NCBI RefSeq assembly: GCF_033153115.1 | Contig: NW_026889789.1 | Span: 7,130,001 to 7,194,000 of the forward strand | From: Saccostrea echinata | Lineage: Eukaryota | Reading direction: 5' to 3' | DNA: 64,000 nucleotides | Shown: positions 26,877 through 42,192 of the stretch, piece by piece | Layout of the letters: each line of letters starts with the position of its first letter | Position numbering within the stretch: position 1 is the stretch's first letter | The notes under the pieces: model-generated | Databases searched by the model: none | Told to the model about the DNA's origin: nothing | The model's input: the letters and a program-made list of their open reading frames with translations, nothing else | Made by a program: the position numbers and the translations under genes

Positions 26877-29800
26877 TTATTCACAGGCTAGTTTACTGTC
26901 AAAACTACTCAGTGCTATTCCAAAAGCTTGAACTGCACAAAGAGGGTAATTAAAATCCATGGTAAACACGTCTTCTGCTACTCGGCCAAACTGCATCACA
27001 ATGTATTCAACTGAAAGGTAGAAATGAGTTGAAAATTCATACTTGGTAGAAACATTTACGACGGAATAAAGTTTGCTTTTTAGCGAATAGTTCTTCAAAG
27101 ATATTAAATCTCATAAAAAATTCTCAGGAATAATACACTACTAAAATCATTTATGATATAGAAATATCATAATAAAACTCTCTTGATGCTTGAAATCACT
27201 ACTGGATACAAATTAAACTAAGAATTATAACCTAATTGATTTTTTTCCTTTACAGCATTCATACACAAAAAAACATTTTTTTTTAAACATTTGCTCTAAC
27301 TAATATAATATTAGTAACTCCTCTCGAAATCTGGTAAATCATGCTGGATGAAAAGGATAAGTAGATTTCCTCTGCTTGCTCATGATCTAACCATATTTTT
27401 ATAATTAACAAGTGACCTAATTCTTACCATCATTGTCATGCACGATTTGGAAATTCTTTACAGATTCCTCAGTAACTCTGCCATGGAAATTCAGCACATA
27501 TGATTGAGTCTCTACAACAAAGAATACAATTGTGATAACTTAATAAGAGGACAGGGAATTTAGCAGTTAACAACTTTTTCCAATCATTTCACATCTACAA
27601 CTATAACGGGTTCAGATACAAGCCATTCACTGACTGATATTTTTCATTTCGAAATCTTAAATCAATGATATTCTAGAAATTGCAGTACAATTGATTATGA
27701 TGTGCTGTAATCTGTATATTCCGTTACTGTGCCGACTTAATTTGATTCTGACGACATACCACCATTCCAGACGGGGGTCTTGTTGTGGAGTTCCAGTATA
27801 TTCTCCATATTTTTCCTCTGGTACCTGCCAATCAAGCCATCATTGTCCTACAAAACACATATCAATACTTACCCTCGTCAGAACCTCATTTGTAGTATAC
27901 CACTTAGTCTGACTTGTTAATTAATAAGTTCAAAACATGGTTTATGTGTGACTGAGTAAGCACCATCAGTTTGGTTGTTTGTTGAGCATATAACATCTTT
28001 AATAAACATTCGTAGATCAGATTTATCGAAAAACCAGCAAGAGCTAAACAAGCAAAACAAGAACAATTTCATTTTTAATATTATTTTCCCCTCCCTTATA
28101 TTACTTCTATGCTTTTTCTATTTAAAACAGATTAAGTTTAAAAATCAAATAAATCATTTTTTGCATCAAGCAATGAATTGGTGGCACATCTAAAAAGAAT
28201 CTTTGACTTTTGTCCACTAGACAACTTAGGTTTGGGTATAAGCATTCAAATCAAACATTCTTTGAATATTGTATAACTGGAAGTAGAACAAAATGCAAAC
28301 TTGTGGACATTTGTTAAAAACCAAGTGGGACAGAATGACAGACATTCAGAGGAGCAGACTGATAAAAAGACGCGGAGCAGATTTATAACTCCCCCTGTCC
28401 CACCCCCAACCCAAGTTTCACCGGTAGGGAACTAATAACTTTGACAGAGGATGGACTCAACTCTACTCTTTACACAAAATGGAGGAACTAATCAAACTTT
28501 TTATTGACTCACAGATCTTGGCTTGATGTCTACTCGTTCATGATCTAAATTCATCCCAGGAATAATGATGGTCATTTTTCTGGGTCCCTTAAAACCTAAG
28601 ACATTTGTTTCCTGAAAAGATGAAGCAGAAATATTTATATCAAATAGTCACTGAGTAATTCTCTAGAATAGAATATACATGACATGTAAAGCTTACAAGA
28701 ATGTCTCTCTCTCTCCCCCCCCCCCCTTCCTTCCCTTAAGTAATACTTCCCTAAAGTAAGTACCTGATTTCAATATTGGAAATATTTGGTGAATAAATTA
28801 TTATGATAATAAATAAATATGTTAGAAAGGTTTGCGGAGAAGTTCTATTGTAAGCGTGCTATTTGCATGAAACGAGTAAAGTAGTGTGCTTCCTTAGATG
28901 TATCATCCATGCATGTGTGGTCAATATAGGGCTTATAGTTACATGGAAATGAGATTTGCTCCAAAAAACTTTAACCTGGCCACTTATCCGGAAAATATAG
29001 GTCAGATCCAGCATCTGAAGCAAGTCCAGTAGTGTGCATCCTTAGATGAATCATCCATTATTTTCCAATAAATATTCACAAATTTGGTGTTTTCCGATGA
29101 TCCTTAAGAAAATATACAGCTATATTATTTATGTAAAACATATTTAGCGGGGCATGTCATTTTTTCGCATGTTTTCATTACATAGACATTTTTTTAAAAT
29201 GAAAAATTGCACTGTTGTGGCGCATAAATATTTATGATATTTACCTGTCGCTATAATATTCATAGACGTCTTTTGGAGAAAGTTTGAATTAAATTGGAGG
29301 GGATATGACTGGTTTTTCGTTAACTATAGATGATCAATGCGTAAAAACAAAGTTAAGAATGGAACGTCATTGAACGTTTTTGAGCACCGAGTTATTGAAA
29401 AATTATGTGTACAGACAGGAAAATGTCCCAAAGAGACTAAATTGTTTTAGTTGCTGTTGGGGATTGCCTACACGTACCTTAGGCCAAAGTGTTCAAAGGG
29501 TAGTAGGTTTTGTAAGAATGGAAGGATGGAAATTTTTGATGATCAACTCCTGTGATATCCTAAAACCCAACATATCGCACGGACGTTGCGCCTATGGATT
29601 TGCATTTTTTCCATACCTTATCGATTAACTGTGTAGACATTCATTTTAAGCTAGATCTCACCAATATCCGACACTCCACAAAAGACGTTTTAGAAAAAAT
29701 GCATCATGTCTAAAAATAGTTATTTAAGTAGGAAAAAAGACAGGAAAAGTCTATAGAAATGAAAGATATTTTAAACTGTAATAAAGATTGACTGGTTTGG

Positions 29801-31156
29801 AATTAGGTTATCGCGTCACCTAGCGTCAAAAAACGTTAAGTGATTGCTCCGTAAACTCTATAACCGCAAAATAAAAATCATTGTATATTTTCAAAATGTT
29901 AGTAAATGGACCTGTTTTTTTTTACATACTAATAATCAAAAGACATGAATTTTATTAGATATATATCATTCTTCAAAGTACACAATAAATTTTCTGTAAA
30001 TGAATTTGTCCGCGATTTTTTTCTATAACAACCATCGTTCATCATTGATGCATAAATATGTATAATAAAGTCTTCATTTCATACTTACATAAATGATTCC
30101 AACTAATTCTTTTCTAGCATTTTCATAATTGCTTTTTGGGTTGTCACCATTGTCAAACAATGTGAACTGGGTCCCTAATAAGTTTGCCCTTTAAAAAGAA
30201 AAGTGGCAAATCTTTTAATACAGACACTATGTATATCAAGGACTACGTTATATATTTCTTATGTCCATGGTAGAAATTTACATGAGGACACTGATAAATT
30301 TTTGCGACACCTTACTTTAGCGAGATGATTATCTGGTATTTATTACAAGGGAATGATGAGTTTTGTTGTTTGTAATCTTTAGAAGTACAAAAATACTTAA
30401 GAATGACATTCTAATGAACAGACAGTCTCGTGTAAATGCACAAAAGTTTTTCCATATAAAAAGTGATAATTTGTATATTCAACAATTTGTCGAACTTTTC
30501 CAAATTTCTGATAAGGGAGGCAAGTATTACCTGAGTTTGCCTACATAGGCCTCACCTCCCCTGGACAGATCTGTAGGATCCGTGGATATCAGGTAGTTTG
30601 ATGTTTTACTCTTCTTCCTCTTTCTACCAGCCAGCAAAAATACCTTTTAAAATGCATGTATCTTTAAAAGTTTTTATATATTCAAAAATTTTAGAATGTA
30701 CATTGGAAACACTTTTTGTACTAATCTGTTACCATGCAAACCCTTTTATTTTAGTAAATTTCAGATGCGTACCCTTGATTCTGATATGTTTTAATCGATA
30801 CAAATCATACAGAAGTATATTTACCAAAGTATATATGATATATACTAATAATCTTTAGAAAACAATCACACTTTTTTTCAAATATCACTGGAAGAGTTAT
30901 ATAGATATACCTAGTAATTAAAAATTAATCCAAAAATTATCTGGCAGCTAACCTTTTTGCCATCATCTTTTTCTAAATGGAGGAAGTATGTGGGATAAAT
31001 CCCTCGCTCCACGCCTTTTTTGTCTCGTGTGATCCGACACTTCATTACGTGACCTTGAGGGGCTGGCCTTAGCAAAAAATCATCAAGGTTATCAGTGAGC
31101 TCGGGAGGTTCGTCTCCAGCCATAGCACTTTCTGCCGCCTCCTCTTGATCATCATT
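26877..31156 (-). CDS. TUB: Tubby-domain exons (TUB/TULP family)
   Basis: Seven GT/AG exons in frame: 30953-31156, 30531-30643, 30089-30188, 28513-28611, 27760-27847, 27428-27511, 26877-27010. Translation includes [20 protein letters not shown]...[110 protein letters not shown]-stop. Confidence 0.95.
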
Positions 31157-40980: not shown

Positions 40981-42115
40981 TATATATATAAAAGAAAAAT
41001 CTTAAGATTTGCTAATTCTATTGTGAAATCAATAGAAATACATAATGCATGTATTTAATCTAATAATCAAAATATATATCGACACTGTTATAATTAAGCT
41101 TTCACTTTGTTGAATTGAAATTTATGTATATATAAAATAATGGTGTTAAAAATTCCTTCGATATTACAAATTGTGTTGCCATCATGTTTGTGTTCTACAT
41201 GCAGTAACTATGAGTAAAATATACCAATGCAATTATAAAATCTATGCATTTTCGTTAAACAAAATCTGTCTTTCAAATTGCCAAAATCCAGATGACTTAT
41301 TTATCTTAAACAAGGTTTTGCCCTGATCTCAGTGGGAGCCCCAAGGTGGCCCAAGGCCCCAAACGTCTGCCTTATCTGTACAAGCATTGTACTTTGGCGG
41401 ACTCCGCCATTTAAAGTAATATATTTTTACAATTCATGTTCATGAATTAAAGTTGTCATAGCGTGTGCCAGTTTCTTTATATAGCAAGTTTCTTTTATTT
41501 ATTGTTACTGTCTCACACGGTTTGGGTATGTTTTTATGTTAGCTGTGCCCGACCCATAAATTAAGGCAATCTTTTGTTAGGTAGACGATCCTTACAATCA
41601 GGTTTGTCCTTGAACAAAATGTTTTATGTTCACAATCATAAAAAATAGATCTAAGTATAACCCAGTCTCGCTTTATGAAAACAAATATAACAGAAAGTAT
41701 AAGTAATAAAACTTTATGTATATAAGTTTAGAAAAAAATAAGACCGGATACGTAAACCGTTGTGACAATCGAACATAAAAAAATCACAACAATAAAGTTA
41801 AATTGAGTAAACAAAAGAGTTATCGTTTTTACCATTAATACATTAACCATGTTAAAATAGAATGTAAATGGATTCAGAAATCAGGGCTTTATAATCGTCT
41901 GAATAGATTTATGCAAAAAAGAAAAGAATTTGGTTGTGACATTACCGTTGCTTTGACAACAATAAACTATTATTTGTAAATTATGCAAACACACGTTATG
42001 CTACAGAAAAAAAATATGCTACACTCTACCTCGTTTCAATTTTTTTTGGATACGCACCACATCTTAATTTATTTAAAAAAAAAAATATTTCAATCATAAT
42101 TGAAATGTTTTTCAT

Positions 42116-42192
42116 ACTTACAGCTTTTTATGAACTGTTGACAGATTTTGGAATTTCAAAATCGATAATTATCAAAGTATAATTTACTTCCT
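42116..42192 (-). promoter_or_regulatory. Non-coding first-exon donor and ETS-like motif of the minus-strand B-box gene
   Basis: The minus strand reads aaaagct|GTAAGTATGAAAAAC (GT at 42121-42120), matching aagct|gtaagtataaaaac at 50943. AGGAAGTAAATT lies 60-70 bp upstream, similar to copy 1. Confidence 0.55.

Follow-up and report, generated by a model that had tools for sequence, protein, structure and literature searches.

A predicted chimeric gene of Saccostrea oysters joins TRIM-like B-boxes to a complete Tubby domain

Tubby proteins carry different modules at their N-terminus: a region binding intraflagellar transport complex A (IFT-A) in animal TUB and TULP3, an F-box in the tubby-like proteins (TLPs) of plants, and WD40/SOCS in vertebrate TULP4. 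Among TRIM genes, one case of fusion is TRIMCyp, in which TRIM5 is joined to cyclophilin A in owl monkeys and in macaques. Here we analyze a 64,000-nt stretch of the genome of the oyster Saccostrea echinata (C40:7130001-7194000, hereafter the window), in which an exon encoding two B-boxes lies upstream of a set of Tubby exons on the minus strand; a related locus lies on a second contig of the same genome, C77. We conclude that the window probably holds a real, Saccostrea-restricted chimeric protein-coding gene, in which the B-boxes are joined to Tubby by a predicted splice. Such a gene would add a new combination of domains to a known family, and it appears to be undescribed in the literature that we searched (tubby domain, B-box, oyster), where we found no description of a B-box–Tubby architecture. 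We infer its transcription, its splice, its lipid binding and its partners from sequence. The gene model is as follows (window coordinates; UTR, untranslated region):

42180..42219, minus strand: TRIM-type core promoter block, with TATA-like TATTTAAAT (42219-42211) and then conserved ACAAGGAAGTAAATTA, recognized because it aligns locally with sequence upstream of TRIM paralogs
42122..42190, minus strand: putative noncoding 5' UTR exon, its start inferred and its end set by the donor GT at 42121-42120 (GCT^GTAAGT; a caret marks exon borders)
39700..42121, minus strand: intron 1, 2.4 kb, terminating in the acceptor tcgtttcag
39286..39699, minus strand: coding exon 1, 138 codons, with B-box 1 (~C18-H55), B-box 2 (C72-H104), a short helix and a 13-codon tail, KSPDEYISSEFQT
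31157..39285, minus strand: intron 2, 8129 nt, with a short interspersed nuclear element (SINE)-like repeat, a reverse transcriptase fragment and two satellites inside
30953..31156, minus strand: coding exon 2, 204 nt, with the acidic linker (NDDQEE...) followed by the first part of the Tubby domain; phase-0 acceptor from the canonical TUB gene
30531..30643, minus strand: Tubby exon, 113 nt, encoding the 19-residue basic-motif stretch
30089..30188, minus strand: Tubby exon, 100 nt
28513..28611, minus strand: Tubby exon, 99 nt
27760..27847, minus strand: Tubby exon, 88 nt
27428..27511, minus strand: Tubby exon, 84 nt
26877..27010, minus strand: last Tubby exon, 134 nt, C-terminus ...SFDSKLACE, stop at 26879-26877

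The B-box exon opens with an ATG at 39699, immediately 3' of its acceptor (...tcgtttcag^ATG), and after 138 open codons reaches a phase-0 donor, ACG^GTATGT, at 39286/39285; unspliced read-through past this donor meets an in-frame stop at 39241. All of this had been claimed by an earlier note on the same DNA, and it agrees with our reading to the base. The first Tubby exon has a phase-0 acceptor at 31156 (ttttccag^AATGATGAT). To obtain the Tubby exons, a script listed GT..AG chains whose exons have the lengths given in the earlier note, and from these we chose the chain matching Tubby proteins throughout. Joined, the B-box exon and the seven Tubby exons form one open frame of 411 codons ending in SKLACE and a stop, with AG/GT at every border, so that the open frame proposed earlier was recovered. 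The exons were joined only inside scripts, for frame checks and for the ratio of nonsynonymous to synonymous substitution rates (dN/dS, or omega), and full-length searches were run with the database protein XP_061192333.1. The interval 26877-42192 is free of N runs. The earlier description of the 8.1-kb intron as mostly transposon DNA is roughly right: besides the SINE-like repeat, the intron holds a reverse transcriptase fragment (33919-34620, plus strand) and satellites with units of 149 bp (35927-36893) and 146 bp (38373-39062), and its segment 33323-37517 is an insertion relative to the copy on C77. The 146-bp satellite was seen twice more, at C77:139.8-140.6 kb and at C77:67946-69054, where its orientation with respect to the gene is reversed.

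The gene model is already in databases, by way of the independent NCBI pipeline. It is identical residue for residue to RefSeq XP_061192333.1, including the junction ...SSEFQT^NDDQEE..., under the name "tubby protein homolog". This protein turned up in a search with the first 125 residues of a 572-aa B-box/NHL-like neighbor (window 4935-6650). Of the earlier claim of a new gene, the architecture stands, being apparently undescribed in papers, but the model itself was already known.

Pfam recognized zf-B_box (PF00643) in two stretches of the B-box exon peptide (E 9e-15), and the B-box region weakly matches that of TRIM28 (PDB 6H3A, E 8e-6). The Tubby domain (PF01167) is complete, with residues 167-406 of XP_061192333.1 covering profile positions 2-256 of 256 (E 4e-92), and the Tubby part matches the human and mouse Tubby structures 1S31, 1C8Z and 1I7E with E-values of 1e-128 to 1e-129. 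A 15-residue stretch of this part is identical in human and mouse Tubby (PDB alignment), and a 19-residue stretch with the basic motif is identical to human TUB chain 1S31 (phmmer alignment). We take the latter to be the site of the Lys/Arg residues that bind phosphatidylinositol 4,5-bisphosphate, PI(4,5)P2 (K330/R332 region of mouse Tubby). The basic motif is kept in all four chimeric copies that we identified, and the phosphoinositide-binding motif of the barrel thus looks intact. Pfam found no Tub_N (PF16322) in XP_061192333.1, and no RING either in the chimera or in the 572-aa gene of the parental type; B-box 1 comes first in both. A coiled coil after the B-boxes is absent in the chimera, where TRIM homology stops at about codon 125. 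In an AlphaFold2 model the B-boxes (~21-117) and the barrel are folded, the sole helix after the B-boxes is short (109-124) and leads into a low-confidence linker, and residues 118-153 have a predicted local distance difference test (pLDDT) score below 50. With a moderate mean pLDDT of 64 and a C-terminal third degraded by a heterogeneous alignment, the model was used for its module-linker-module picture only; it is consistent with an acidic, flexible and disordered linker of ~35-45 residues between the B-boxes and the barrel.

The first ~125 residues are 71-78% identical to a RING-less family of B-box/NHL-like proteins. As the earlier note had claimed, TRIM similarity is lost at about codon 125 (tblastn 1-125/126; blastn to 39321-39338), and the sole indel relative to intact paralogs is an in-frame deletion of three codons, which alignment bore out. 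Nucleotide homology to ~150 scored TRIM-like paralogs is confined to the interval from 39729 to ~39321-39338, so that upstream it starts again 30 nt 5' of the ATG. Compared with TRIM coding sequence beyond ~codon 125, the 13-codon tail scores 34, versus 30 +/- 4.5 for shuffles; it is possible that the tail is TRIM sequence altered by small frameshifts. Farther upstream, the promoter block (42217-42180, TATTTAAAT...ACAAGGAAGTAAATTA) aligns to the regions upstream of the TRIM paralogs at window 4935 and at C40 +87931, and the alignment with the former extends into the 5' exon and its GTAAGT donor (here 42121-42120). The block is ~90% conserved in the C77 copy. The earlier proposal that a TRIM-type promoter and 5' UTR donor were retained is therefore supported by homology over a short block. 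"TRIM" is a loose label for the parent, since this B-box/coiled-coil/NHL-like family has no RING. The neighbor at 4935-6650 (plus strand) is an intact single-exon gene of this kind, encoding B-box 1, B-box 2, a coiled coil and an NHL/Vgb-lyase-like propeller with no RING. A disrupted B-box/NHL-like copy at 51217-52891 (plus strand), with several in-frame stops and frame changes, offers a neutral comparison for the B-box exon. Genome-wide, 1,167 B-box candidates were noted at first look, of which 150 were scored, and units of the form Tubby (minus strand)/TRIM-like (plus strand) are repeated along C40 and C77.

On the same strand as the chimera, and 68 kb farther upstream, is the canonical TUB gene (C40:7229287-7241970, window +99287..+111970, minus), under the NCBI name "tubby-related protein 3-like" (544/601 aa). 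The chimera has a copy of its last seven exons only, and homology to TUB ends 4 nt upstream of the 31156 acceptor. The Tub_N exon (PF16322, ...RRRIEEQSRKKRQQLGILQHN...) occurs in the genome only at C40:7241830-7241970, 9 kb upstream of the canonical TUB copy, and, nearly identical, at C77:190522-190662. Relative to canonical TUB, the Tubby exons of the chimera are 87-98% identical (exons 2-3, 97-98%) and the introns ~75%; the Tubby domain is 94% identical to that of S. echinata canonical TUB and matches human TUB with an E-value of 1e-129. Both the parental TRIM-like genes and canonical TUB are still present in the same cluster as the chimera. Native TUB exons upstream of the chimera's Tubby exons, to which these could instead be spliced, were also sought: a six-frame comparison of 31157-64000 with the upstream region of canonical TUB found nothing like Tub_N or the other canonical upstream open frames, and neither this nor the comparison of paralogs yielded a native or alternative 5' exon for the chimera's Tubby copy. 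Other traces of duplication are present in the cluster. A copy of more than 20 kb of the canonical TUB region (C40 +99-124 kb) lies at C77:178-205 kb, 93-97% identical and with a coding dS of 0.017; it represents either a haplotig or a segmental duplication of very recent date. Dead partial Tubby duplicates, with exons 4-7 only and with indels, were observed at C40 +81042-82481 and C77:161388-163728.

We searched a database of 5.8 billion proteins with XP_061192333.1 and examined the best 120 of 5,250 matches. PF00643 and PF01167 occur together in three of these 120, all from Saccostrea: XP_061192333.1 itself, S. cucullata XP_062595589.1 (407 aa), and a 400-aa S. cucullata paralog. The earlier note had known of no such architecture. 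The matches from Ostrea, Crassostrea and Magallana among the best 120 are all canonical TUB isoforms (519-609 aa). A representative search with Tubby exon 1 returned mainly fragments of intron read-through open reading frames (ORFs) and canonical TUBs, along with one spurious bacterial repeat protein, and none of ten longer matches has a B-box. A search with the B-box exon (as a 152-aa ORF) returned only oyster B-box proteins that are 53-67% identical, none near-identical. 

The second S. echinata copy is at C77:36746-81865 and is collinear with the window over the whole span between the promoter block and the 3' end of the Tubby exons, with 74-82% noncoding identity and an intron of 36 kb versus 8 kb. 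Its B-box exon (C77:79023-79436) has 138 codons, the same tail and donor, GTATGTATTTGGCAT, and its first 15 intron bases are identical; we saw no NCBI two-domain protein for this copy. All four chimeric copies keep the B-box Cys/His ligands, and the chimeras have in common a junction of the form ...EY(I/M)(S/P)SE(F/Y)QT followed by (N/I). A tree built from 122 B-box N-termini groups the four chimeric exons in a single clade (Shimodaira–Hasegawa-like approximate likelihood-ratio test 99, stem 0.28), which sits among Saccostrea TRIM-like genes and within which copies pair by species. From this tree we conclude that there was one fusion event, before the split of S. echinata and S. cucullata, after which the copies were either duplicated or homogenized within each species. 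The Tubby protein tree did not resolve the timing of the duplication with respect to the oyster genera, canonical proteins being nearly invariant. Taken together, the identical NCBI model, the S. cucullata junctions, the conserved C77 exon, the absence of Tub_N and the signs of purifying selection described below support the central claim of the earlier note, that TRIM-derived B-boxes, with a TRIM-type 5' end, replace the native Tubby N-terminus.

The two halves were compared by dN/dS within S. echinata, as the earlier note had suggested, and both comparisons point to constraint. The Tubby half differs from canonical TUB with dN 0.029 and dS 0.24; the domain alone has an omega of 0.058, and a three-way comparison assigns 0.08 to the branch of the chimera's Tubby copy. 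Constraint is relaxed in the 27 codons of the linker (omega 0.48). All 12 internal Tubby splice sites are intact, and the 411 codons contain neither stop nor frameshift. Over their 414 nt, the C40 and C77 B-box exons are separated by 38 substitutions but not by a single indel, whereas their flanks show 19 gap events in 503 aligned nt (Poisson probability of no indel in the exon, ~1e-7). Of these substitutions, 15 are synonymous (77 sites) and 23 nonsynonymous (337 sites), a synonymous excess with a binomial p of 0.002. By the Nei–Gojobori method (NG86), omega for this pair is 0.24-0.32, versus 0.36-0.41 for distinct intact TRIM paralogs and 0.64-0.70 for near-identical C40/C77 pairs. Read-through past the donor is not conserved: the stop comes after 14 codons in the window copy, while ~70 codons stay open in C77. 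Purifying selection on both halves is supported, and the pattern suggests that the gene was retained under selection after the fusion.

Several observations weigh against a chimeric gene. The RefSeq models are no proof of the splice, because NCBI models can be extended 5' ab initio. A Tubby-only protein could begin at an in-frame Met (MAGDEPPE, residue 150) if a different promoter were used. No transcript-derived fragment of the B-box exon was found among proteins of 84-266 aa; RNA-seq datasets of S. echinata exist (PRJNA379157, from embryos, larvae and adults, and PRJNA1236486, from ganglia and gonads; PMC12564202). The B-box half evolves fast (67-69% identity between the chimeras of the two species, on a stem branch of 0.28), and therefore the constraint on it is weak apart from the fold. 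The high identity of exons 2-3 to canonical TUB means that gene conversion may make the Tubby half look more constrained than it is. Finally, the C77 copy carries a GT>TT change in its 5' UTR donor and a 2-nt insertion in an A8 run of Tubby exon 6, so the arrangement can decay; this copy is either a pseudogene or, as regards the exon-6 insertion, may reflect a homopolymer assembly error.

The main alternative, which part of this evidence would fit, is that of two separate units joined only by gene predictors: a functional Tubby-only gene, expressed from an unrecognized promoter or 5' UTR exon and starting at Met 150, and either a B-box-only gene or an inert TRIM fragment. The internal ATG is in good context (GCTATGG), strong constraint is shown mainly for the Tubby half, the B-box half diverges fast between species, and the intron to be spliced is long, 8 kb in the window and 36 kb in the C77 copy. 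We nevertheless consider this explanation unlikely. It does not account for a truncated exon that has been kept between paralogs with its non-TRIM tail, its phase-0 donor and 15 intron bases, and with no indel in 414 nt, when the read-through 3' of that donor was not kept (14 versus ~70 codons). The same junction recurs in two S. cucullata gene models, comparison of the paralog groups turned up no conserved alternative 5' exon, and the internal Met is itself not conserved, being T or V in some relatives.

We regard it as very improbable that both pieces are functionless, decaying products of segmental duplication whose frame is open by luck. Broken copies are indeed nearby, with a TRIM pseudogene occupying 51217-52891 and pieces of Tubby genes lying at C40 +81 kb, C77:124 kb and C77:161 kb, and the C77 chimera has its two lesions, but decay is hard to reconcile with a Tubby-domain omega of 0.06-0.08 at a dS of ~0.2, with 411 codons free of stops and frameshifts and with every splice site intact, with the synonymous excess (p=0.002) and lack of indels of a B-box exon set in indel-rich flanks, or with open-frame models of 400 and 407 aa in a second species. 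Least credible of all is an assembly artifact that placed the B-box and Tubby exons side by side: the interval is repeat-rich and the assembly contains near-duplicate regions (C40 +99-124 kb versus C77:178-205 kb, 93-97% identity), but 26877-42192 is gap-free, C77 shows the same order and orientation at ~80% noncoding identity, and a separately assembled species gives the same fused models.

The rest of the window contains a non-LTR (long terminal repeat) retrotransposon remnant at 11271-14506 (plus strand), with ORFs for an endonuclease/exonuclease/phosphatase domain and a reverse transcriptase. A purine-rich 32/48-bp minisatellite (GAAGGA...) at 55543-55940 explains why both GC and AT skew are strong at 54-56 kb and why the minus strand has long spurious ORFs. 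The ~300-bp SINE-like repeat occurs in both orientations (21846-22147, 25915-26111, 32893-33195, 50449-50705, 53799-54065 and 57324-57627) and also throughout C77. Two N runs, gaps or masking (25554-25696 and 56927-57054), both lie outside the chimeric gene.

Assuming the B-box–Tubby gene is real, we propose that it arose from two partial duplicates within a cluster where TRIM-like and Tubby genes alternate. A RING-less "TRIM2/3-like" gene would have provided the 5' part: core promoter, 5' UTR exon, intron and the first ~125 codons. The B-box exon is truncated, carries an additional 13 codons and ends in the phase-0 GTATGT donor. The 3' part would be a duplicate of the last seven TUB exons, with the whole Tubby domain, using TUB's own phase-0 acceptor, and splicing over the 8.1-kb repeat-rich intron would join the two. 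In the resulting protein, the Tubby domain would dock on PI(4,5)P2 membranes and present the B-boxes in place of the IFT-A-binding helix. The protein would thereby be uncoupled from ciliary cargo delivery and would offer a B-box interaction or oligomerization surface at the membrane. The earlier idea of a membrane-tethered partner or decoy is speculation. A bolder possibility is a functional, Saccostrea-specific membrane adaptor, with the barrel anchored to PI(4,5)P2 in the plasma membrane or the ciliary membrane and the fast-evolving B-boxes recruiting or sequestering members of the greatly expanded RING-less B-box/NHL family; such an adaptor could tie a lineage-specific, probably immune-related family to phosphoinositide or G-protein-coupled receptor signaling, analogous to F-box–Tubby and SOCS–Tubby proteins and independent of them. 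We would give this possibility only a slim chance of being right.

The chimera fits a view in which Tubby function is set by the N-terminal module placed on one lipid-binding barrel. A young swap of B-boxes for the N-terminus, kept in two oyster species, would be a clean example of how exon shuffling between two families, both amplified locally, can create a gene, and each step of its origin should be datable, because both parents still adjoin it. If expressed, the gene would provide a natural experiment on a Tubby barrel freed from ciliary trafficking, and a handle on the poorly understood expansion of RING-less B-box/NHL genes in bivalves. The architecture is easily missed, because databases call the protein only a "tubby protein homolog".

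Among the known systems, the closest on the Tubby side is canonical TUB/TULP3, represented in S. echinata by C40:7229287-7241970. The chimera has the same exon borders and the same 11-residue basic motif, but it lacks the N-terminus of ~270-330 residues with its Tub_N/IFT-A-binding region, has two B-boxes instead, and evolves faster than the near-invariant canonical gene. On the other side, it shares with the oyster RING-less "TRIM2/3-like" family the spacing of the Zn ligands, the acceptor+ATG arrangement and the promoter/5' UTR block, and differs in being truncated before the coiled coil and the beta-propeller; what is a single coding exon in that family became the chimera's 5' exon, with a new splice donor. 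Plant F-box–Tubby TLPs and TULP4 likewise combine the Tubby barrel with a different N-terminal interaction module, linked to the ubiquitin system. The chimera differs from them in its tandem B-box and, since it has no RING, F-box or SOCS box, has no evident ligase-recruiting element; moreover, those architectures are ancient, whereas the chimera is young and confined to one oyster genus. We know of no antiviral role of a B-box–Tubby chimera. TRIMCyp is similarly lineage-specific, with a TRIM 5' part that has its promoter and keeps N-terminal domains, and with a domain captured from another gene in place of the C-terminal recognition domain, but there the captured part is a retrocopy and not, as here, an intron-containing segmental duplicate. 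The TRIM part of the oyster gene, moreover, lacks a RING, has next to nothing of the coiled coil and is reduced to the B-boxes.

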